Shown: positions 24,558-54,387, numbered from the stretch's first letter. The stretch is 64,000 nucleotides of DNA from Phyllobates terribilis (GCF_046119375.1 NW_027362771.1:586334001-586398000), one strand, 5' to 3'. The notes: a model not told the origin generated them from the sequence alone. Numbers and translations are program-made.

Positions 24558-25386
24558 CTTTTTTTATTTTTTTTTTTCGGCTGCCACTTGGTAAATTTGA
24601 CCCGTGGTGTGCACAAAGCTCACAGTGGCAGATTGTGCAGGACTCTTGCGATGGGGCCGATGTCTGTGCAGATATAAGGCTACATGTGTCGCCTGACACT
24701 GAAATTGCTGCAATATTAGATGTATTGATTTAGTATGGCGTTTCGCTATGACCTCCTGTGACGTCGAGTGGCAAATGTTTGCAAATATGTTGGATTTTCT
24801 GCTGCTGGTTGCAAGTCACATGCGACTTTATCTGCAGCGTGGCTCATTTATTTACAGCAAAATCACAAAACAGTCGCATAACAGCGAGTTGCAGCCATTT
24901 TTGTCCTGTGACTTTTCAGAAAACTGCTGTTGCACAACACATGTCGCAGTGTAGTGAGAACTAATACCTACATCCCCCTGTTGTCTCTTCACAGATGCCG
25001 GCGGTTTCTCGCTGTTATCAGGTGGTGCCCCCCGCCCACGAGTTAGGAGAAGACTGCAGTCAGGACGACCTCGTATGGAGGATCGGGAATGCCGTCTGAA
25101 AACACTGCTGCTGAGAGTCGGAGACCTTGGACTCGGCTATGACTCTGAAGAGACCGTCCTATTCAAGTACTGCGGTGGCGGATGTGCCCGATCACGTACA
25201 AACCACGACCTGACTCTTACACGGCTGCTGCAGAAGAGCGACCTCCCTTCTCTTCTGGAGGAGAAAATATACGGCGGGCCCTGCTGCCGCCCCACGCACT
25301 ATGAAGATGTCGCCTTCCTGGATGACAGCCACCGGTGGCACACAGTGGAAAAACTGTCAGCAGCAGCGTGCGGCTGTGTGGGGTAA
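20016..25386 (+). CDS. PSPN: Persephin (GDNF-family ligand), join(20016..20130,24995..25386), 168 aa
   Basis: Exon 1 encodes a signal-peptide-like [22 protein letters not shown] and ends G|gtacat (phase 1). Exon 2 follows ttcacag| in matching phase, with furin-like RVRR and a 7-Cys cystine knot ([46 protein letters not shown]). Convergent with ALKBH7 as in human. Confidence 0.9.
20333..20979 (+). mobile_element. Internally deleted Tc1 derivative in the PSPN intron
   Basis: TA-flanked TIRs (cagtgaaggaaataagtatt...aatacttatttactccactg). Only the N-terminal HTH remains ([30 protein letters not shown]). Confidence 0.92.
21582..24495 (-). mobile_element. Tc1-like element in the PSPN intron, catalytic DD34E domain still open, N-terminus frameshifted
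   Basis: TIRs cactgctcaaaaaaataaagggaacac / gtgttccatttatttttttgagcagt. ORF 23154-24092 has [15 protein letters not shown] and SPDLNPIEH with 34 residues between D and E. Confidence 0.95.
21842..23325. repeat. About 21 tandem copies of a 71-bp unit derived from the transposase C-terminus and stop codon
   Basis: Period 71 (acgtgcctg at 22141 and 22212). The minus strand of the unit reads [22 protein letters not shown] then TGA or TCA. Confidence 0.97.
24494..24556. repeat. (TA)n microsatellite of about 30 units abutting the Tc1 terminus
   Basis: Direct reading. Confidence 0.98.
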
Positions 25387-27507: not shown

Positions 27508-30500
27508 TCAGCTCACCGGAAGATTTCTGCAGATAATTGAGATACGGCGATCTCGGGGCACTGGCACGCCATTGAAGAAGGACTCCTCTCCACGTAGGAT
27601 TTCATGGGTAAACTTGAAGCGAGCGACACCGCTGAGATGAAAAGTGACAAAGTGTGAGTGACGTCCAGATAAAAACATACAATGTAATATAATAGAAGAG
27701 AGGTGAGGGTGGGGTGATGTTCCCCATTGTGGACAATCTGTACAATAAGCAGATCACACAGTCTTCCCCCACCTGGCACTATTACAAAAGTAGAGATAAG
27801 CAAAACGATTGTCACTACCCTGATCTGGCGTCCACTTTAGCAAAACACGGGAGCAGGGCGAACTATCCCGGCTGGCACGCGAATGCCTGTATGCAGAATT
27901 ACCGGGCTCCCACAAAGTAATGGTGTCGTTCAAGGCCTCGGCACTATGAAGTTTGCACTGAAGTGGACATCGGACTAGGGAAGCACGATCTTATATCTCA
28001 TCTCTAATTGTAATCAATGGGAGATCAAAGAGGAGAGAGGGGAAAAGAATAGAGAGGAGAGAGGGGAAAAGAATAGAGAGGAGAGAGGGGAAAAGAATAG
28101 AGAGGAGAGAGGGGAACAGAATAGAGAGGAGAGAGGGGAACAGAATAGAGAGGAGAGAGGTTAACAGAATAGAGAGGAGAGAGGTTAACAGAATAGAGAG
28201 GAGAGAGGGGAACAGAATAGAGAGGAGAGAGGGGAACAGAATAGAGAGGAGAGAGGGGCACAGAATAGAGAGGAGAGAGGGGCACAGAATAGAGAGGAGA
28301 GAGGGGAACAGAATAGAGAGGAGAGAGGGGAACAGAATAGAGAGGAGAGAGGGGCAAAGAATAGAGAGGAGAGAGGGGAAAAGAATAGAGAGGACAGAGG
28401 GGAACAGAATAGAGAGGAGAGAGGGGAGAGGGGCACAGAATAGAGAGGAGAGAGGGGAACAGAATAGAGAGGAGAGAGGGGCACAGAATAGAGAGGAGAG
28501 AGGGGCACAGAATAGAGAGGAGAGAGGGGCACAGAATAGAGAGGAGAGAGGGGCACAGAATAGAGAGGAGAGAGGGGCACAGAATAGAGAGGAGAGGGGC
28601 ACAGAATAGAGAGGAGAGAGGGGCACAGAATAGAGAGGAGAGAGGGGCACAGAATAGAGAGGAGAGAGGGGCACAGAATAGAGAGGAGAGAGGGGAAAAG
28701 AATAGAGAGGACAGAGGGGAACAGAATAGAGAGGAGAGAGGGGAGAGGGGCACAGAATAGAGAGGAGAGAGGGGAGAGGGGCACAGAATAGAGAGGAGAG
28801 AGGGGCACAGAATAGAGAGGAGAGAGGGGCACAGAATAGAGAGGAGAGAGGGGCACAGAATAGAGAGGAGAGAGGGGCACAGAATAGAGAGGAGAGAGGG
28901 GCACAGAATAGAGAGGAGAGAGGGGAAAAGAATAGAGAGGAGAGAGGGGAAAAGAATAGAGAGGAGAGAGGGGAAAAGAATAGAGAGGAGAGAGGGGAAA
29001 AGAATAGAGAGGAGAGAGGGGAAAAGAATAGAGAGGGGAGAGGGGCACAGAATAGAGAGGAGAGAGGGGCACAGAATAGAGAGGAGAGAGGGGCACAGAA
29101 TAGAGAGAGAGGGGCACAGAATAGAGAGGAGAGAGGGGCACAGAATAGAGAGGAGAGAGGGGCACAGAATAGAGAGGAGAGAGGGGCACAGAATAGAGAG
29201 GAGAGAGGGGCACAGAATAGAGAGGAGAGAGGGGCACAGAATAGAGAGGAGAGAGGGGAACAGAATAGAAAGGGGTATAGAATAGAGAGGAGAGAGGGGC
29301 ACAGAATAGAGAGGAGAGAGGGGCACAGAATAGAGAGGAGAGAGGGGCACAGAATAGAGAGGAGAGAGGGGCACAGAATAGAGAGGAGAGAGGGGCACAG
29401 AATAGAGAGGAGAGAGGGGCACAGAATAGAGAGGAGAGAGGGCAACACAATAGAGAGGGCAACACAATAGAGAGGGCAACACAATAGAGAGGGCAACAGA
29501 ATAGAGGAGAGAGAAAAAAAAGTGAGATCGAGATCCTATAAGCTGGCTACAGACATCAGATATTAGATTCCGACAGATCCTGATCTTCTGTTTAGTAATC
29601 TGCTGTGAATCCTACAAGTGTGACCAGCACTGCTATCGGACCTTACGGGAAGGTGATCGCACAATAGAGTGGATTCACTGGACCCGGTCCATCGGCCATG
29701 TCAGTAGTCTGTGACTGTTGCAGCCTTCAGAACCACCTGTTGCCCAACAGCATCTGTGGCTCTTCTCTTGATTAGCCAGCCACCCCATACACTTTGGATA
29801 GACGGCTGGGTTCAGTCAACAGTAGTGCAATGGGTGCGGCCATTTTTACCAGGAGTGGCTAACAATCTGTGAGGTCTTTCTCTAAGACACGGGTAAAGTA
29901 ATGGCGCACACAGGCATGAAGACTACTGACCTCATTATATACAGGCAGCGTCTGGGCAGCAATAGATCCACTCGCTCCTCTCCATTTTCCACAGACACCA
30001 GTCGCATGACGCTGCTGGATAGCAGGCAGATCCCGGCAATGGTGCTGCCACAGAACTGGTAAAGGAGAGGCGGCATGAGCTGAGTGCTAGTGTCCTCCGC
30101 ACACAGTGTCAGGACCCGACCCACCAACCACACAGCCTCACCTTCACGCTGTCCACGTGCGGTTTGATGTATCCATCTTTCTGGAGGTCTAAGACATGGA
30201 CGAGTGACAGCTGGTTCTCTCCGGGGGGGAAGGCCTTGTCTCTCACCCTCTGGATGACAGCGGAGGAGTCTGGGGACCAGTGCAGGCGCTCGACCTCCCG
30301 GAAGCCATGGATCGCCTGCAGGGAGAGAAGATGTACAGAGCTATGGTAAAGTAATGGCAGCTCAGCCAGTTCACCAACTGCTGGATATGGGGGGGGGCAT
30401 GATGCTGGGGGGGGAATGTTTTAGAGCAGTACTGAGGAGTGCAGCTGTGAATCCAGCACTAGGGAGGAGGAAGAAAACACTTACTAGAAAGGCAGCTGCA

Positions 30501-31278
30501 ATCTGATCCCTCAGTGACCTGTCAGTCCATCTTCAGAAAGTAGTATCGTCAGATAAATTTGAGCAATTTTGCAATTTGCTGCTTGTTAAAATTTTCAGCC
30601 GTTCTTGAGATAAACACTTTTTTTCTTCTTTTCTTCGCAGCTCATTGCCATGGAGACCGACCACCGTGGTCTACACATTTGCCGTGCTTACAAGCTGTGA
30701 ACTAGCGATGGTCGGTCTCCATGGCAACAAGCCACGAACAAAAGGAAAAAGTGTTATTATCTCAAGAACGGCTGAACGTTTTAACGAGTAGTAAACTGAA
30801 GACGAGCTGGTATTTACAGGAAAAATCCGACAATGTCCATCTGTGACGCTGGATTTTAGCAGAATAATGATAAATGGCCTAAACATATAACAGGGGATAT
30901 GACACTATTCAGACGTCTGCAGTACAGAGGCGACATTTTGAGGAATAAGTCGCACACAGCAGTAAGGACGGTCCCCGCACTCACGTCATCCCAATGGCCG
31001 CTCTCGTAGCGCTTCTTCCTCAGTACAGGCTCCAGCTCCCGGCACAGTGCGGCCTCCTCCTCGGCAGTAATGAAGTCCGGCTGCAGGGTGAGGCCGGGGG
31101 ACAGCTGGGACAGCACGGCTGCTGAGGACGGAGACACCTGCTTATCCGGCAGCGGAACCGCATGGTGGAACCGGGACCAGATTCCCGATTTTACCGCAGC
31201 AAGACCGCGCGGCCTATTCACAGCGCAGACCCACCGCCGCGAGTTACCAAGGCAACAGCGACCACTGGACGCCGCCAT
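27508..31278 (-). CDS. ALKBH7: AlkB homolog 7, mitochondrial Fe(II)/2-oxoglutarate dioxygenase, complement(join(27508..27631,29931..30055,30142..30315,30985..31278)), 238 aa
   Basis: Four exons with consistent phases (0,0,2), 717 nt. Motifs [46 protein letters not shown] (HxD), RRCLYIM, FTHEIL (distal His), [11 protein letters not shown]. Confidence 0.96.
28020..29510. repeat. 24-bp polypurine minisatellite (cagaatagagaggagagaggggca), about 60 copies, in ALKBH7 intron 3
   Basis: Period 24 (tagagagg at 28441 and 28465). The + strand is almost entirely A/G. Confidence 0.97.
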
Positions 31279-31600
31279 CTTGTGACTGCGCACTGCATTC
31301 TGGGAGGGCAGGGAGCGCTACTCAGGGACGTGCCCAAAGTAACCAATCACATCTCAGCTCTCATTGCAGCAAGGCACATTGAAAAATGAAAGGCGTTACC
31401 CGATTGGTTGCCGTTTTTATCAGCTTCCCCAGCTACACTGTAATCTATTCCTAGTTTATGGGACTTGTAGTCCTCAAGACTCTGCTTTTCTAATCCTCCC
31501 AGTTTCTCATGTAGAAATAATGCTCAGTGCACATATACTCTTAATTATGTTTTATTGATAGGGCTATACAGTGATAGTCTTGTCCACCAATCGCAAATTA
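31270..31600. promoter_or_regulatory. Putative bidirectional promoter of ALKBH7 and the SSX2IP-like gene
   Basis: YY1-type GCCGCCATCTT over the ALKBH7 ATG. CCAAT boxes near 31342, 31403 (reverse) and 31588. ZNF143/THAP11-type ACTACAAGTCCCA on the minus strand at 31459-31471. Confidence 0.6.
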
Positions 31601-31719
31601 TTAGTGTAAATAAACAAAAACCCATCACCCAAACATCAATCTGTAATAATATGAAATATAACATGACCCTGGTGCTCCCACAACATGGTAAAGGTATTTA
31701 TATCTGGTAAAAATAACAT

Positions 31720-33088
31720 CCGCAGTGCCCCCATAATAACAGCGACATCCACAGAGTCCCCATAATAACAGCGACATCCACAGTGCCCCCATAATAACAG
31801 TGATATCCACAGTGCTCCTATAATAACAGTGACATCCACAGTGCCCCCATAATAACAGTGATATCCACAGTGCTCCCATAATAACAGTGATATCCACAGT
31901 GCTCCCATAATAACAGTGATATCCACAGTGCCCCCATAATAACAGTGATATCCACAGTGCTCCCATAATAACAGGGATATCCACAGTGCTCCCATAACAG
32001 TGATATCCACAGTGCTCCCATAACAGTGATATCCACAGTGCTCCCATAATAACAGTGACATCCACAGTGCTCCCATAATAACAGTGACATCCACAGTGCC
32101 CCCATAATAACAGTGATATCCACAGTGCTCCCATAATAACAGTGATATCCACAGTGCTCCCATAATAACAGTGACATCCACAGTGCTCCCATAATAACAG
32201 TGACATCCACAGTGCCCCATAATAACAGTGACATCCACAGTGCCCCATAATAACAGTGATATCCACAGTGCCCCATAATAACAGTGATATCCACAGTGCC
32301 CCTATAATAACAGCGATATACACAGTGCTCCCATAATAACAGTGATATCCACAGTGCTCCCATAATAACAGTGATATCCACAGTGCCCCTATAATAACAG
32401 CGATATACACAATGCCCCCATAATAACAGCGACATCCACAGTGCTCCCATAATAACAGCGACATCCACAGTGCCCCCATAATAACAGCGACATCCACAGT
32501 GCCCCCATAATAACAGCGATATCCACAGTGCTCCCATAATAACAGCGACATCCACAGTGCTCCCATAATAACAGCGACATCCACAGTGTCCCCATAATAA
32601 CAGTGATATCCACAGTGCCCCTATAATAACAGCGATATACACAATGCCCCCATAATAACAGTGACATCTACAGTGCTCCCATAATAACAGTGACATCCAC
32701 AGTGCCCCCATAATAACAGCGACATCCACAGTGCTCCCATAACAGTGACATCCACAGTGCCCCCATAATAACAGCGACATCCACAGTGCCCCCATAATAA
32801 CAGCGACATCCACAGTGCCCCCATAATAACAGCGACATCCACAGTGCCCCCATAATAACAGCGACATCCACAGTGCCCCCATAATAACAATGATATCCAC
32901 AGTGCCCCCATAATAACAGCGACATCCACAGTGCCCCCATAATAACAGCGACATCCACAGTGCCCCCATAATAACAGCGACATCCACAGTGCCCCCATAA
33001 TAACAGTGACATTCACAGTGCCCCCATAATAACAGCGACATCCACAGTGCCCCCATAATAAAAGTGACATCCACAGTGCCCCCATAAC
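31720..33088. repeat. 29-bp minisatellite (ataataacagtgacatccacagtgccccc), about 47 copies
   Basis: Period 29 (cataata at 32764 and 32793). Confidence 0.97.
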
Positions 33089-34019
33089 AGCTGAGTACAT
33101 CACTTGACCATGTTCATGAGTTCCACAGGCAAAAAAAAAAAAAGTGTGATTGCGTCATGTGAACGTCCCTTAATACTGTGTCCACACGTTGCGGCTGCTT
33201 TTTTTTGTCGGATCAAATAAAAAAATATTTTTTGAAATTGCCGTGACTCCACCATGATTCCACCATGATTATGCTAATAACTTACCCCACACCATGGCCG
33301 CACCTTGCTAACGCAGCCTCAGGGCACAGCCACACAGGACTTGCAGCACATCTCACCTCAGCAGGGCAGCTGATCCCCATGGGGCAATTAGAGGGAGTTG
33401 TTAAATATCACCACAGACATTGGAGCCATTTTTCTGTAGTGTTGTGTAGACAGATCTGATCCTTCACAGTAGCTGAGCCTTGTCCCAAGAGCTCACAATC
33501 AACAGACACTGGTAAGGGAAGCTGTATCTAATGGGCAAACTCACTAGGGGGGGGCACATATCAGTGTTACACCATTTTGATTAATAGTTCAGGTCACCAG
33601 CCATGACCCTTTACTAAGTCCGTGTCAAATCTGTCAGTATTGCCCCCCATACTATTCTTCTGTTTGTCTTATTTCTCCTGGTAATAATGGTCCTCAGAGC
33701 TTATAGTCCTATCCGTCTTTCTTCGCCACCTTCTTGTTTTTCCAAAACATGGCAAAAACCTCAATGACCCCAAAGTGTGAATACTCCCCGAGATGCTACA
33801 GAGCACGCGATGGCCTCATTGACTGCTATGGAAATGACTTCTGTTGGCTTTGGTTGTCATTTGTTTTAGTGCATTTGTATATGGAAATATTGTAGCTGGA
33901 TGAAGTTTACTGTGTAGAGTCCGCAGACAATAATTACTAATGTGCTGGCTGCCGAATATAACCGTCCTGTGTATGTGGCCTAGGTGCCAGGGAAACACCA
34001 GCAAGCCTTGTAATAAATG

Positions 34020-34650
34020 GTTACAGGGTAATAAGAGGTTGAGGAGCCGGGTCACTGTAATGAGGCTACAGGGGTAATAAGAGGCTCAGGAGCCGGGTTA
34101 CTGTAATAAGAGGTTACAGGGGTAATAAGAGGATCAGGAGCTGGGTTACTGTAATAAGAGGATCAGGAGCCGGGTTACTGTAATAAGAGGTTACAGGGGT
34201 AATAAGAGGATCAGGAGCTGGGTTACTGTAATAAGAGGTTACAGGGGTAATAAGAGGATCAGGAGCCGGGTTACTGTAATAAGAGGTTACAGGGGTAATA
34301 AGAGGATCAGGAGCCGGGTTACTGTAATAAGAGGTTACAGGTTAATGAGGATCAGGAGCCGGGTTACTGTAATAAGAGGGTACAGGGGTAATAAGAGGAT
34401 CAGGAGCCGGGTTACTGTAATGAGAGGTTACAGGGTAATGAGGATCAGGAGCCGGGTTAATGTAATAAGGTTACAGGGGTAATAAGAGGATCAGGAGCCG
34501 GGTTACTGTAGTAAGAGGTTACAGGGGTAATAAGAGGATCAGGAGCCGGGTTACTGTAATAAGAGGTTACAGGGTAATAAGAGGATCAGGAGCCGGGTTA
34601 CTGTAATAAGAGGTTACAGGGTAATGAGGATTAGGAGCCGGGTTAATGTT
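34020..34650. repeat. About 48-bp minisatellite (gaggatcaggagccgggttactgtaataagaggttacaggggtaataa), about 13 copies
   Basis: Direct reading. Confidence 0.93.
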
Positions 34651-34781
34651 GGAAATTGTCAGGTTTTGGGATACTAGGAGACATTTTATGTATTTAGGTT
34701 AACAATAAACCTGATGTCCATTTGTTGTTTGTTCCCTTTCTGGGTGATGAATTTTTGCCCCTACAACAAGTATTAGGAGCC

Positions 34782-37700
34782 ATGCATCGCTCATCAGGGA
34801 TGTCAGAGAAAAATGTCCGTGAAGTTCTGTCAGAGAATACGGAGCTGAAGAAATTCCATGAGCAGATGAGGATAGAGGTGCGGGCCATCCTCTGCAGACA
34901 TGAAGGCGTCCTCGGCAGGGTGACCACAGATGTACGTCACACCACGGCCTCTTATTCCACCATGATGTCCACCTGTAAGTTTATTTTTACCTATTTGTCT
35001 TTCAGGATTCGACAACCGTAAACAAGCGTATGGGGGGAGGACGTACAAGGCCCACTCGTGTTGGGGAAGTTGGGTTAACGGTAAACCTAAAGAAACAGTG
35101 GAACAGCCTCAAGCAACTGGTGGAGATACTGGAAGCTCGAGGTGAGGAGAATAAACTAATTCTACCCATTCTGTGTAGAAGTGATGGCACAAGCTTGTAC
35201 TGTGGGGCTTGGTAGTAATGTGTTCTTGGCTTGGCATAGCCACCAGTTTGATATTTTCGTCGAGGCTTCACCTTATTTTTATTTTTTTTTTACCTTCTCT
35301 GTAGCGACGCAGTCCAATGTGATTAGCGTGACTGACCATGAGAAGGAACTGACCCAACTCAAGAAGGAGGTAGAGGAGCTTAAAGAAGAGCTAGGACAGA
35401 GCCGGGAGCTGATCAGTCAACAGCAGCAGCTATTACAGGTATTACAGGATGTGAAGGGTGTAGGTTAATGTCGAATTGGCAAATGCTATAGGTTGTGGGA
35501 AGATGGAAGTGTGTATATGCCATTGAGATGGAGGGGGGATACTTTTTTTTTTTATGGGAACAAGGGGTATGGAAGCTTGGTTGATGGTGGAAAAGCAGAG
35601 AAAATGGTGGCAATGGTTGGTAGGAAGGAGGAGCCAATGGTGGCAATGGTTGACTGTGGGAAATTTGATCCAATGGCAGCAGTGGATAATGGTGGAAAAA
35701 CGGAGCCAATGGTGGCAATTGTTGATGGTGGGAAAGTGAAGCCACTGGCTGCAATGGTTGATGGTGGGTAAGTGGAGCCAATGGCGGCAATGGTTGACAG
35801 TGGAAAAACTGAGCCAGTAGCGGTAATGGTTGACGTTCAGAAAGCAGAGCAAGTGGTGGCAATGGTTGATGGTGGTAAAGCAGAGTCAATGGCGGCAGTG
35901 GTTGAAGGTGGGAAAGCGGAGCCAGTTATGGCAATGGTTGACAGTAGGAAAGCTGAGACAATGGTGGCAATGGTTGACGGTGGGAAAGTGGATCCAATTT
36001 CATCAATGGTTGAAAGTGGAGCCAATGGTGGCAATAGGCAGACTTCTGGACCTCCTGAGCTTAGGTTGTAGGACATCAAAATACTTGTTCCAATCTTTTT
36101 CCAGGGCATAAATGCATATGGTGCCAGCCAAGAGGGAGCAATAATCAGTAAAGAAACCATTGTTAGAATATATTTGGTAATTCTGGATGAAGGTTGTCTT
36201 ATCAATGTCTTGCCCAGGACCAGCTGATGCCACTGCCCGGTGAGGGTCAGCAATCTCCTCTCTGGGATGCGTACTTCTTAGAAGAACAGCTGAGATTACA
36301 ACAAGACCGTATGGCCTTTGAGGAGCAGAAGCTGGCCTTTCAGGATGAGCGGGATAAGTTCACGGAGGCGGCTATCCGTCTGGGGAGAGAGGTAACCTCA
36401 GAGTCATTGCTCTTGTAACCTCATTATGATAATGGGACTGAACTTGAGCTCCAAATGTTAGATGCATGTTGTCAGACTAAATTAATCTTCTGGTAAAGCA
36501 GAAGTCAATGGCCCCATAGTTAGGATAAAACCCAGTGTGAGGAAGATCTTCCCCTATCACTGCCATATCCCTCAATTTTTGAGAACTACAGAACATATCC
36601 ATCTTGGGATCTTTCTACTTCTCGGCCAGGCTTTACGTTAACCAGTGAGTAATGTTTTACGCAGCGTCTCCAGTTTAAGGCCGATCAGGCTCTTTTCATG
36701 AAGCAGCAGTTTTTGACCATGACTCCTGGTCTGGGGACGCCTCCGTGGAAGAAGACTCCTCCGTGGTCAACACTTAGTAAGTACGCTTAGTTTCTGAGGC
36801 TGTGTGTAGAGCATGGCAGGTATTTAGGATCAAGTACTTGACACATTGGATTGTAACCTTTGTTTTCCAAGTGCCGCCTGAGACCTCCGCATCTATATAT
36901 TCCAGAATCCATCAATATCAACATGGAATTTTCAACATTATTCTCACCATACACATTAGATAAACATTGGCCAAACCCACCAATTTTGGCAGAAGTGGTC
37001 AACTATGTATTGTGTATAGGGATGTCCTGACAACCATGTGATGGGTTAAAAGAAGGATTGGGTATATTGAATGTCTACATGCCCAATCATTTGTCCTTTA
37101 GACCCCAATAGTGTCTTGCAGCAGATTTTTACCTTCTCACTAGATACAAGCCCAGTGTGTAGGGAGTGTGGAGAAATGGCTGCCAGCTAAATGACCATTC
37201 GGCTGATGTCTGTGGGATGAGGGGGGGTATGACCACCTTTACTGATCAGTATTACAGATTTTTCTCTGTTGTGGGTCTGTTGGCTGGCCTAAATTGGGTT
37301 TTAAAGCATTAATAGTGTATACTCTCTATTCACAGCAGCGGACACCCCGAAAAAACCCTCCAGTAATCCCAAACAGCAGGCCACAGCCGTCCAGTCCTGC
37401 GGCACTAAACCTCGCAGACTGCTCCCTTCTGCAGATCCTGCGACTCCGAGCACGGCGGAGCTGTACAGGGTCCTGAGACTGGAGCCTCCCAGCAGGTGAT
37501 GAGATCACACATTATTTACACAGGCATTATTAACTCATTGCAATATTACGTCTACAGGAAAAGACCAGACTCGAAAATGGTCTTCTACCATATTGTGCAC
37601 AGATTTCCTGCGCTCACCTGTGTGCATCAAAGGTTACAGATTAGAAATAAATCACACGTTGCCTCACCTGTTAGCAATACACACCTAATCCTTCTCCCCA

Positions 37701-40168
37701 CTGAGCAGTTGCTGCATTATTTCCAGTCTACACAATCCTATATAAGACTGCTCTGTAGCGCCCCCCTCAGGACAAGAGGGAGATTTGCACTTCTGCAACT
37801 GTTGTAGCTCATAAGGATCAACTTTTGCAAAGTCATTTTTATTAATACATGCATATATCTGCGTAATGTTTTTCCAGATCCATAAAGTCTCATAGATGTG
37901 AGAGCAGCAGTAACCAAGACACAGAGTCAGAGGAGAGTACCCAGAGATGGAGTGACAGCCTGTCACCAAGTAATGAGTGTAAGAGACTTAAATTCTATTT
38001 TTTTTTTTACTATATACGCTATAATACTGCTCCCTATGTACAAGAATATAACTACTATAATACTGCCCCCTATGTACAAGAATATAACTACTATAATACT
38101 GCCCCTATGTACAAGAATATAACTACTATAATACTGCCCCTATGTACAAGAATATAACTACTATAATACTGCTCCCTATGTACAAGAATATAACTACTAT
38201 AATACTGCCCCCTATGTATAAGAATATAACTACTATAATACTGCTCCTATGTACAAGAATATAACTACTATAATACTGCCCCCTATGTACAAGAATAGAA
38301 GTACTATAATACTGTCCCCTATGTACAATAAAATAACTACTATATTTCTCCCATGTACAAGAATATAACTACTATAATACTGCCCCAACATACAAGAATA
38401 TAACTACTATAATACTGCCCCCTATGTACAAGAATATAACTACTATAATACTGCTCCAATGTACAAGAATATAACTACTATAATACTGCCCCCTATGTAC
38501 AAGAATATAACTACTATAATTCTGCTCCTATGTACAAGAATATATCTACTATAATACTGCTCCCTATGTACAAGAATATATCTACTATAATACTGCTCCT
38601 ATGTACAAGAATATAACTACTATAATACTGCTCCTATGTGCAAGAATATAACTACTAGAATACTGCTCCTATGTACAAGAATATAACTACTATAATACTG
38701 CTCCTATGTACAAGAATATAACTACTATAATACTGCCCCTATGTACAAGAATATATCTACTATAATAATACTGCCCCTATGTACAAGAATATAACTACTA
38801 TAATACCACGGTTTATAACACTAGACTTGTTTGGATTTTTTTTCTTGCTCATAAATCTTACTTTGATTTTATGTCCTCTCCTTCTAGCTCCTGAGCTACA
38901 CCCTCTTCCTCAGTACCTGATTCCCTTTAAGCTGAGCATGACCCCTTATCTTCGCCCCAGGCCCACCCCAGTAAGCTTGCCTCGCAGCCACGCTGAGCCT
39001 CGCACGCCTCCTACTGCAGAGCTCTTTAGAGCCTTGCATCTTACTCCGGCTGAAAGGTGAGGGGTAAAAAAAAAGAAACTGTAGGAAATGTTGGGGTTGT
39101 GTGCACCTCTGGGTGGCAGGGTAAAATTGCAGAATAATGGGTTAACTATTTATTTTGGGAAGGAGGTTTAGTTTTTTAGTTTTTGCACTGACTGCTCTCT
39201 TCTGGGCTTGTAGCATACCTTCAGCAAAGAGGGGGCGTGGAGATGAATTAAGAAGATCTATCCTCAATCATTCCCATCGCAGAGCCAGCATCTCCAAGGG
39301 TGCAGAGTCCCCTTGTTGTAATGATGATGTCAGGAGAAGCGAGGAAGCCCCTCACTGTCCCTATGAGTTGTCCAGAGCGGATTGTGAGTTGGATTCTCTG
39401 TCTTCTGAAGATAGCAGACACATGCACGGAGAAGCGGATACTCCCAATAGTGATGTGCTGTCCTCAACGAAGGAGAACTCTGAATGTTTTGACAATGACT
39501 CTCTGTACAGAGTGACTCCTCTTCATGACACCACCTATATCCACCATGGAGAGAACGTGCCTTATCTTAGGGATGATGACCACTGCTGCCACCAAGATGC
39601 AGACCAAAGCTTGTGGCCATGTCAAGAGCTGGAGAAGAAGTTTTCCAGTAGGGTGTATTCGAATACCATTAATAAAAAGCCAAAAGTGACCCTCCAGGCT
39701 GATGACTGTGGAAATCGTGAGACCCTTCATGCTCAGGATGCTTGCAGAAGCAGGTCACAAGAGAGACCACCCTCTAAAGACCAATGTAGAACTAGGTCCA
39801 AGGAAGACGTTCACCGTAGAAGTCTCCCTTGCCACCAGCCCAAAGTAGTTCTCCATTTCGAAGATGATGGTACCATGGAAAGAAACCAGGCACCTCCTCA
39901 CAGCACATCCAAGAGGAGAAGATCCTTGGACTCTCTTCACCACAAACATGGCTGCAAAGCCCAGTCGAAAGAGAGCCAGTCTCTCCATAAAAGATCATCT
40001 CGTCCCCACAGAGACTCCTTGTACACCTCTGGTCCGGGACGTTCACCCCTCCATTTACTTCACTCGTGCCCATCTGCCCGAAATGCTACACCGCGCACTA
40101 CCAAATATGTGGTGTCATCAGATCTTTATGCTGACCTGCTCACCCAGTTTTTGGATTGCTCTTTCTAA
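34782..40168 (+). CDS. SSX2IP/ADIP (afadin- and alpha-actinin-binding protein)-like paralog, join(34782..34919,35006..35141,35305..35438,36218..36391,36665..36776,37336..37495,37878..37969,38888..39056,39214..40168), 689 aa; true start uncertain
   Basis: Nine GT-AG exons join in one frame (2070 nt). Matches to recalled SSX2IP: SENTELKK, KKQWNSLK, VISVTDHEKE...QQQQLLQ, DAYFLEE, DKFTEAAIRLGRERLQFKADQALFMKQQFL. AATAAA near 40646. Confidence 0.82.
35570..36030. repeat. Degenerate 36-bp intronic repeat (gatggtgggaaagcggagccaatggtggcaatggtt)
   Basis: About 12 imperfect units; translates as repeated MVAMVDGGKAEP. Confidence 0.85.
38020..38810. repeat. About 36-bp minisatellite (tactgccccctatgtacaagaatataactactataa), about 22 copies, intronic
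   Basis: Direct reading. Confidence 0.95.
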
Positions 40169-41391
40169 AGAATCTGAACTTGGGTAATTGGGAGAGACTT
40201 GATTACCTTTTTTTTTTTTTTTTTTTTTTTAGAGGACAAGACCCTCTAAATTATTGAGCCCCTTTATTTATAAAGGCTTGTCACCATTTTTTGGTGGTTC
40301 CTGGGTAATCACTTTGGATTAAGACTCCCTAGTTTGAAAGCACTTAAATGGGTTCCCCAACCTGCGTCTGTGAGATCTTAGTTGTCACCCGTTTTACCCC
40401 CAAAAATGCTCTTATTGGTCTCTTGTACCCCCACTGAAAGTTTTGTGAATGGCTATTTATCTTTGGGTGGAGAAACCCACTGGCTCTTGATCGCCTACCA
40501 CAATTTTTAGGGCAGGACTAAGGGGTTGCACGTCAGACTTTTTTGTAGAGCATGGAGTACCATTTTTGCACGCTTTGGCGCACAATTGGGTTTGCGTTTA
40601 CTTAAATTACTGATGTTTGTTTTTTTTTTATAATGTATGTTTCAATAAATTAAAACTGGCTGCCATAGTGTGCATCACTGTATCTTTGGGCACTACTATG
40701 GAGCAGGAATTGGTGATGTGGCCCCTTTAGTGTGTACGGGGAGGACATGATGAAGGTCATCCCTACATGCGTGATCATATACCAGGTCTAATACCAGTGA
40801 TCTATGGTGATGAGACGGCAGATGACGGATGGGCTGGCGGCCCTGTGCTCACATACCTGCGTTCATTCATTTACTGGACCTCATTCAGTAGTTACGTTCG
40901 CTGCTGGAGGAATCCCAGTTATGCACGGGTCACATTTTTGCTTTTATATCCATAATGAACAAATCCTCTAATTTTTAAGTGTCCACCCATCGCTTACTTA
41001 AAGGCATGCCATAAAGTCTCCAGATGTCAAGACTCAACCACAATAATAAAAAATATTAATATATTTGGAGAAAAAAAATTTCATGTGAAAGGTCTGATAA
41101 TAAAATGATTATAGGGTGTTTTCAAGCAATCGTCTGTAATTTGTCGGGAATTTGACAGCAAGTAATTACACAGCAGCTGTCAGACCAACAAACATGCAGA
41201 GTCAAGCCCCCCCATACACAACCCTCTGATCAGATAATGTATGTGGGGGCCTCCTGATTGCACCCCCCTGACAGTTGAGGACCTGCTCTGTTGAATTTCA
41301 CCTATTGGTCGTTTGGTCTGGAGCAGTGATCGGCTTCTGCTACGAGTCCCGCGGCGGCGGGCGCCTGACCAAGCTGCGCTATCCATTGTAT

Positions 41392-50733: not shown

Positions 50734-54387
<3,654 letters not shown>

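Follow-up and report, generated by a model that had tools for sequence, protein, structure and literature searches.

Gene organization at the locus

The window analyzed here, a stretch of 64,000 nucleotides from Phyllobates terribilis (GCF_046119375.1, NW_027362771.1:586334001-586398000), carries a gene of the SSX2IP family between ALKBH7 and CLPP. Nine exons with AG/GT boundaries on the plus strand form there a single open frame. With donors at 34931 (GTACGT) and 37978, this frame encodes 696 amino acids and is exactly the NCBI protein P0016, registered as "uncharacterized protein [Phyllobates terribilis]", while alternative nearby donors at 34919 and 37969 reproduce the nine-exon, 689-codon model of the initial annotation. 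The corresponding locus (L002) of GCA_046119375.1 shows 0 mismatches with the window over 25,387 bases. The gene is already present, nameless, in the public annotation of the species.

All coding exons lie on the plus strand. Exon 1 (34782-34931) starts at the ATG (MHRSSG...) behind an acceptor probably located at 34770 or 34776 and is followed by exon 2 (35006-35141). Exon 3 (35305-35438) carries the ISVTDHEKEL block, which aligns where the half of human SSX2IP that binds gamma-tubulin begins. Exon 4 (36218-36391) contains the FTEAAIRLG block, in the most conserved coiled coil, and gives tblastn E-values of 1e-9 to 1e-16 with SSX2IP-family proteins. The KQQFL block is found in exon 5 (36665-36776), also detected by tblastn. 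Two copies of one motif are borne by exon 6 (37336-37495; TPSTAELYRVLRL) and exon 8 (38888-39056; TPPTAELFRALHL), on either side of exon 7 (37878-37978), which ended at 37969 in the earlier model. Exon 9 (39214-40168) encodes a tail of 317 amino acids and the stop codon, and closes with two conserved motifs, RDSLYTSGPGRSPLH and DLLTQFLDCSF.

Spliced transcripts were found in X5, a run from a related frog that diverges from the window, in its contigs, at between a few and about 12 letters per 100. Its contigs connect 35006-35139 to 35303-35439 (record 17, exons 2 and 3), 36215-36389 to 36663-36776 (record 18, exons 4 and 5), and 38888-39053 to 39212-39630 (record 21, exons 8 and 9), and an additional one spans 37336-37496 (record 19, exon 6). 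The Logan transcript contig L001 of another frog (SRR12112769, protein P0015) aligns to all nine coding exons, including exon 7. The runs X1 and X2, near-identical to the window, gave short contigs, one of which enters an intron, and were excluded as RNA evidence.

Two of the introns between coding exons harbor tandem arrays. The one between exons 3 and 4 includes a 36-bp array (12 copies, 71-75% matches) at 35578-36020 that is open in two plus-strand frames of about 100 codons each, lies outside the annotated protein and was covered by no run. In the intron preceding exon 8, a 35-bp minisatellite (38019-38806) reaches a word depth of 1e4 to 5e5 in four of four runs. As these runs come from different organisms, such a huge depth implies that units related to it must be scattered through these frog genomes in very high numbers.

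Phylogenetic position

The homology to the central and C-terminal coiled coil of SSX2IP, already proposed in the initial annotation, was recovered by BLASTP, with E-values of 1e-19 against residues 268-483 of guinea-pig SSX2IP and 1e-33 against residues 278-590 of a turtle paralog. Phmmer retrieves teleost and turtle proteins carrying the Pfam ADIP domain (PF11559) at 1e-27 to 1e-34. Searching with the conserved first 340 residues yields orthologs in more than 30 anurans, nearly all labeled "uncharacterized protein" and none with PF11559; these include X. tropicalis LOC100036665, X. laevis LOC108711716, Discoglossus, Bombina, and pipids. The tail by itself retrieves frog proteins of Engystomops, Rana, Discoglossus, and Hymenochirus. 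Shorter relatives, likewise devoid of PF11559, occur in three caecilians (about 405 amino acids), three salamanders (about 625 amino acids), and the coelacanth (389 amino acids). The turtle protein used as a query adds squamates, alligator, platypus, sloth, sharks and rays, bichir, sturgeon, and lungfish, and also returns the canonical SSX2IP of three frogs, one bird, and one rodent. One outcome named beforehand as refuting the initial proposal, a well-annotated conserved paralog, is half borne out: the gene is annotated in P. terribilis and in more than 30 other frogs, but no name is attached to it.

In a tree of 65 proteins rooted on Lingula, obtained by a quick search with support from the Shimodaira-Hasegawa-like approximate likelihood ratio test (SH-aLRT) only and including some long rows (sloth, lungfish), the vertebrate sequences form two starred clades. 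The canonical clade groups mammal, bird, and frog SSX2IP (P0202, P0211, P0219) with coelacanth ssx2ipa and the teleost a and b copies. The paralog clade (SH-aLRT 100) comprises cartilaginous fishes, bichir, sturgeon, coelacanth, lungfish, turtles, squamates, alligator, platypus, sloth, and all of the amphibian genes. The approximately unbiased (AU) test rejects a grouping of the amphibian genes with frog SSX2IP (log-likelihood difference 155.7, p 4e-39). The tree and the AU test bear out the proposal of an extra SSX2IP-family gene distinct from the canonical frog one, whereas the suggestion that this paralog is lineage-restricted has to be abandoned, since it is the ortholog of an ancient gene found from sharks to platypus.

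These results make it barely conceivable that the gene originated within frogs or amphibians, by duplication or retrocopying of canonical SSX2IP and insertion between ALKBH7 and CLPP. Such an insertion would suit the human genome, where no gene is known to lie between CLPP and ALKBH7 and the paralog appears to be lacking, but the AU test, the tree, and synteny together refute it. Indeed, an ADIP-domain gene occupies the equivalent slot in turtle, alligator, and platypus, and the eight coding introns argue against a retrocopy.

Two other assignments were dropped. The turtle proteins were considered as canonical SSX2IP until synteny and the tree were available, and teleost ssx2ipa was considered as the ortholog, but the tree puts both teleost copies, a and b, with canonical SSX2IP. 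In three fused teleost models (P0042, P0084, P0192), ssx2ipa is linked to a mucolipin or G-gamma domain, which fits the canonical locus. Human SSX2IP at 1p22 is flanked by MCOLN2/3 and GNG5, and MCOLN1 and GNG7 lie on 19p13 with CLPP and ALKBH7; from this pattern of flanking genes, the two SSX2IP genes may be ohnologs derived from whole-genome duplication. The sloth "B-like" protein (P0235) belongs to the paralog clade, and the great length of its branch hints that the gene was either retained or is decaying in Xenarthra.

Conserved position and inversion

ALKBH7 (27514-31293, minus strand, ATG at 31278) stands head to head with the gene and was identified by tblastx with the turtle locus, by a gene call with a 2OG-FeII_Oxy_2 domain, and by an open reading frame. 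The CLPP exons (50776-53946, minus strand), matched by tblastx to those of the turtle, are tail to tail with it, and an exon of PSPN (persephin; 25045-25386, plus strand) was matched by tblastx to a turtle TGF_beta gene. A 24-bp purine-rich minisatellite of 59 copies (28029-29458) lies in an ALKBH7 intron and accounts for the marked skew in both GC and AT at 28-30 kb.

The order in the window is PSPN(+), ALKBH7(-), gene(+), CLPP(-). In the green turtle, it reads CLPP(+), a 605-amino acid ADIP-domain gene(+), ALKBH7(+), PSPN(-), and in the platypus (L005, 10001-19883) CLPP(+), ADIP-domain gene(+), ALKBH7(+), PSPN(-), followed by GTF2F1. The alligator has a single fused model with the ADIP domain and the 2OG-FeII_Oxy_2 domain of ALKBH7. 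Among amphibians, the caecilian Rhinatrema shows gene(+), ALKBH7(+), PSPN(-); Discoglossus has an arrangement identical to that of the window, Rana shows ALKBH7(-), gene(+), and Pleurodeles gene(+), CLPP(-). Relative to the turtle, only the SSX2IP-family gene is flipped in the window, the neighbors being equal. The CLPP-ALKBH7 interval is the ancestral home of the SSX2IP paralog, and the orientations are most simply explained by a single inversion in the ancestor shared by frogs and salamanders, once the caecilians had split off. As the N-terminus is already truncated in the caecilian protein, the ADIP exons may have been lost before the inversion.

The platypus paralog, set between CLPP and ALKBH7-PSPN-GTF2F1, indicates that the gene was present in the mammalian ancestor. 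The proposal that it was lost in mammals consequently stands only in part: the platypus retains an ADIP-bearing paralog in the slot, and the occupation of this slot in both turtle and platypus confines the presumed loss to mammals after the divergence of monotremes.

Absence of the ADIP domain and 5' end of the gene

The initial annotation had found no exons for the N-terminal ADIP region, and this observation was reproduced by several approaches. The Pfam ADIP model has no match in the exons of the window nor in four frog orthologs, and a Pfam run exon by exon gave sub-threshold coiled-coil noise only. With turtle, teleost, salamander, caecilian, and coelacanth proteins as tblastn queries, the window is matched only from residue ~245-268 of the full-length queries onward. 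A profile built from 20 N-terminal regions and run against all stop-free stretches of the 64 kb in six frames reached a best E-value of 0.49, while, as a positive control, the ADIP profile finds every turtle ADIP exon at 1e-9 to 1e-21, a control made favorable by the inclusion of the turtle sequence in the profile. The precomputed Pfam annotation lists no domain for any of the amphibian orthologs retrieved (more than 30 anurans, three caecilians, three salamanders), and the matches of the turtle-protein search include no full-length amphibian paralog. The amphibian versions of the paralog are without the ADIP domain in all those found, as annotated genes, in the three orders.

Two arrangements that might have hidden the domain were also considered. 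A split gene, with the ADIP half annotated apart in amphibians, was dropped, no short ADIP-only amphibian protein having been retrieved. A partial inversion leaving minus-strand ADIP exons between the gene and CLPP was dropped as well, nothing being found there by tblastn, tblastx, or the profile.

Positions 52-99 of L001 align with 85% identity to 33464-33511 (plus strand), a short non-coding exon of the 5' untranslated region with 33464 as the start of the alignment, and this block ends at the consensus donor ACTG/GTAAGG, with GTAAGG at 33512. The following aligned block of L001 begins at 34753, shortly before the ATG at 34782, and L001 has an in-frame TAG 18 nucleotides upstream of its ATG. 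When the window exon is joined to the acceptor at 34770 or 34776, an in-frame TGA and no upstream ATG are obtained either way, and genomic read-through upstream of the ATG meets a stop at 34695-34697. The mapped exon and the in-frame stops put the start of the gene at a distance of about 2.2 kb from the ATG of ALKBH7 (31278, minus strand), with the two genes head to head. A 29-bp minisatellite of 47.7 copies (31716-33087) separates the ALKBH7 start from the 5' exon, and a 48-bp one (34009-34649) lies inside the intron of the 5' untranslated region; together they account for 58% of the 3.5 kb that separates the ATG of the gene from the ALKBH7 start, a stretch that had rightly been described as mostly minisatellite.

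The start methionine is invariant among 26 frog orthologs, the full-length anuran proteins beginning with MHRS and that of Discoglossus with MYRP. It aligns with a conserved internal methionine, in the EEMYK sequence of canonical SSX2IP and of the coelacanth protein (residue 255 in guinea pig). Short models of coelacanth (389 amino acids) and lungfish (355 amino acids) begin at the equivalent methionine, and the caecilian protein begins at the equivalent of turtle residue ~192.

It remains to consider a full-length gene whose ADIP exons, far upstream beyond the window or unassembled, would be spliced to the exon at 34782, the short form being an isoform or an artefact. Frog introns can be long, as the genes of Rana and Discoglossus span 26-33 kb and that of Pleurodeles 68 kb; candidate acceptors stand just 5' of the ATG, the first coding exon is devoid of read coverage, and the coelacanth gene has both a 501-amino acid ADIP form and the short form. 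Nevertheless, such a structure is unlikely, because ALKBH7 lies on the opposite strand only 3.5 kb upstream, neither the 34.8 kb on the upstream side nor the 23.8 kb on the downstream side contains anything ADIP-like, the non-coding 5' exon with its in-frame stop lies within the interval to ALKBH7, the start methionine is common to more than 30 independent frog gene models, and no amphibian paralog protein bearing PF11559 was retrieved.

Several points do weigh against a genuine N-terminal truncation. The first coding exon was covered by no run in the reads search, so the 5' structure in P. terribilis is deduced from gene models and from the transcript of a different frog. The 10 kb that precede the caecilian gene showed no ADIP relic but include a gap of 500 N. 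In salamanders, the loss of the domain is deduced from annotated gene models. Finally, the short coelacanth and lungfish models may be partial models, or may otherwise reflect an old internal promoter. Considered as a whole, the best explanation, and a highly probable one, is that the gene is the P. terribilis ortholog of an ancient jawed-vertebrate SSX2IP paralog, N-truncated, remodeled, and constrained.

Remodeling and constraint

The last exon was said to encode a Ser/Arg/His/Asp-rich tract of 317 amino acids, and its composition agrees (S 13.6%, R 9.8%, D 8.8%, H 6.9%). The motif TAELYRxLRL is ancestral and occurs in two copies in frogs (exons 6 and 8) and in one in caecilians and turtles. 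By tblastn, exons 6 and 8 match the same stretch of turtle residues and the single caecilian or turtle copy matches both exons, which points to an anuran-specific duplication of the motif exon. The final DLLxQFLDCSF is common to frogs, caecilians, salamanders, lungfish, turtles, and alligator, and a variant of this DLLxxFLDxSF-type ending occurs in squamates, bichir, and sturgeon; the ending is absent from the canonical proteins examined. A DSLY motif resembles the C-termini of shark proteins. Between these ancestral motifs, frogs have an insertion of about 270 residues in which Ser, Arg, Asp, and His abound; CFDNDSLYRVTPL, RDSLYTSGPGRSPLH, and DLLTQFLDCSF are islands of the tail. By comparison of these proteins, the tail appears as an anuran internal expansion with an ancestral extreme C-terminus. 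The tail had been described as novel, and this holds for the internal frog expansion but not for the terminal motifs, which are common to the caecilian, salamander, lungfish, turtle, and alligator proteins.

Salamander orthologs (P0087, P0118, P0058) show a remodeling unlike that of the frog tail, namely an insertion of about 115 amino acids made of repeated ELEELRQE-type coiled-coil units between the ISVTDHE and QQQLLQ blocks.

AlphaFold2, run with the alignment of 26 frog proteins, predicts helices at residues 9-41, 74-98, 104-142, and 154-217, the last two with a predicted local distance difference test score near 90, short helices on the two TAELYRVL motifs, and a terminal helix at 677-692. 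The remaining chain is of low confidence and probably disordered, including the last exon save for the terminal helix.

The ratio of nonsynonymous to synonymous substitution rates (dN/dS), calculated pairwise by the Nei-Gojobori method between the window gene and L001, is 0.22 for the whole gene, 0.19 for the coiled-coil exons, 0.23 for the middle exons, and 0.24 for the last exon. The gene is under purifying selection, tail included. The alignment of the 26 frog proteins has 78 invariant columns, among them M1, the ISVTDHEKEL block, and FTEAAIRLG.

This constraint bears on the view that the gene is a decaying relic, a truncated copy still transcribed but non-functional. The loss of the signature domain of the family, the predicted disorder of about two thirds of the protein, and the minisatellites in and around the gene would all agree with decay. 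However, the frame is open across nine exons with canonical splice sites, spliced contigs were found, the gene has persisted across crown Anura, with Discoglossus, Bombina, and pipids among its carriers, and the low dN/dS extends to the tail, with the invariant columns pointing in the same direction. A relic is thus very unlikely, and the dN/dS of 0.22 together with the spliced contigs runs against the refuting outcome named at the start, no expression with a dN/dS near 1, and favors a non-decaying gene.

Proposed function

According to Hori et al. (2014, PMC3989863), residues 1-373 of human SSX2IP bind PCM1 and go to centriolar satellites, whereas residues 373-614 bind gamma-tubulin and are delocalised but rescue microtubule anchoring once forced to the centrosome. 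In guinea-pig SSX2IP (612 amino acids), whose numbering is assumed here to equal the human one, ISRQDHEQ at 374, FTEAAIRLG at 452, and KQQFL at 475 align to frog exons 3-5. The frog protein keeps the conserved core of the gamma-tubulin-binding half and the equivalent of residues 255-372, and is without about 250 residues of the PCM1-binding half.

The retained regions suggest that the frog protein could act as an adaptor of the gamma-tubulin complex or of microtubule minus ends uncoupled from satellite targeting, the disordered tail and the conserved C-terminal helix supplying localisation or regulation. Uncoupling of a gamma-tubulin-complex adaptor from satellite targeting is quite possible, if tentative. 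It would derive from 34-36% identity to a region coarsely mapped in the human protein, and any function of the paralog would, in every species, be deduced from homology; both points weaken the proposal. A more specific version, in which the ADIP-less adaptor is freed from PCM1 and satellites and is either regulated or sent to a non-centrosomal site by the frog-specific tail and the terminal helix, seems rather unlikely. The large amphibian egg and the early embryo would be a possible setting for such a redirected adaptor. The ADIP-less form may also have fixed a short isoform already present in lobe-finned fishes, the short coelacanth and lungfish models starting at the equivalent methionine.

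A role other than gamma-tubulin binding is somewhat less likely but a serious alternative, either at cell junctions or the actomyosin cortex, in line with proposals made for ADIP, or as a competitor titrating partners of canonical SSX2IP such as WDR8. The dominant-negative scaffold suggested in the initial annotation is likewise a hypothesis. Canonical ADIP has junctional and planar-polarity roles in Xenopus (PMC12919953), the coiled coils could heterodimerise with canonical SSX2IP, and the frog-specific tail suggests new partners.

The adaptor proposal can be set against three known systems. Canonical SSX2IP (ADIP, hMsd1) shares the coiled coils homologous to residues ~255-485, including ISxxDHE, FTEAAIRLG-KQQFL, and TAELYRxLRL, but it is a paralog at a separate locus, and the frog protein differs from it by having neither the ADIP domain nor roughly the first 250 residues and by its duplicated motif exon, its expansion of about 270 amino acids, and its C-terminal DLLxxFLDxSF. 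The ADIP-bearing paralogs of turtle, platypus, alligator, and others belong to the same clade, occupy the CLPP/ALKBH7-PSPN position in turtle and platypus and adjoin ALKBH7 in the fused alligator model, and in most cases share the C-terminal motif; they measure 500-610 amino acids with a full ADIP domain and the ancestral orientation, whereas the frog gene is N-truncated, inverted, and tail-expanded. The frog protein may also be seen as a natural counterpart of hMsd1-C, the engineered human fragment 373-614, the PCM1-binding part being gone and the gamma-tubulin-binding part kept. It differs from hMsd1-C by retaining the equivalent of 255-372, by belonging to the paralog, and by having a separate tail and a terminal helix that might provide targeting.

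Significance

Vertebrates are usually credited with one SSX2IP gene, whose biochemistry has been worked out to a large extent in egg extract and embryos of Xenopus. Being in the public annotation, the locus as such is not new, and no paper naming the paralog or the Xenopus LOC numbers was found in the literature. Its identity as an ancient second SSX2IP and its ancestral home between CLPP and ALKBH7 appear undescribed, as do the ADIP-less retention in amphibians, the inversion in frogs and salamanders, and the remodeling of the frog tail.

A Xenopus ADIP antibody was raised against the immunogen GST-ADIP(295-554) (PMC12919953). Identity between the paralog and canonical SSX2IP is about 36% (Engystomops) in the immunogen-homologous region, and, as this region is homologous to the paralog, antibody cross-reaction and redundancy are possible concerns.

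A second SSX2IP gene is thus ancestral in vertebrates, housed in the CLPP-ALKBH7 slot and persisting from sharks to platypus. Frogs, including Xenopus (LOC100036665, LOC108711716), retain from it a conserved and constrained ADIP-less protein, and the frog gene represents a natural deletion experiment that parts the gamma-tubulin-binding half of the family from its PCM1-binding half.

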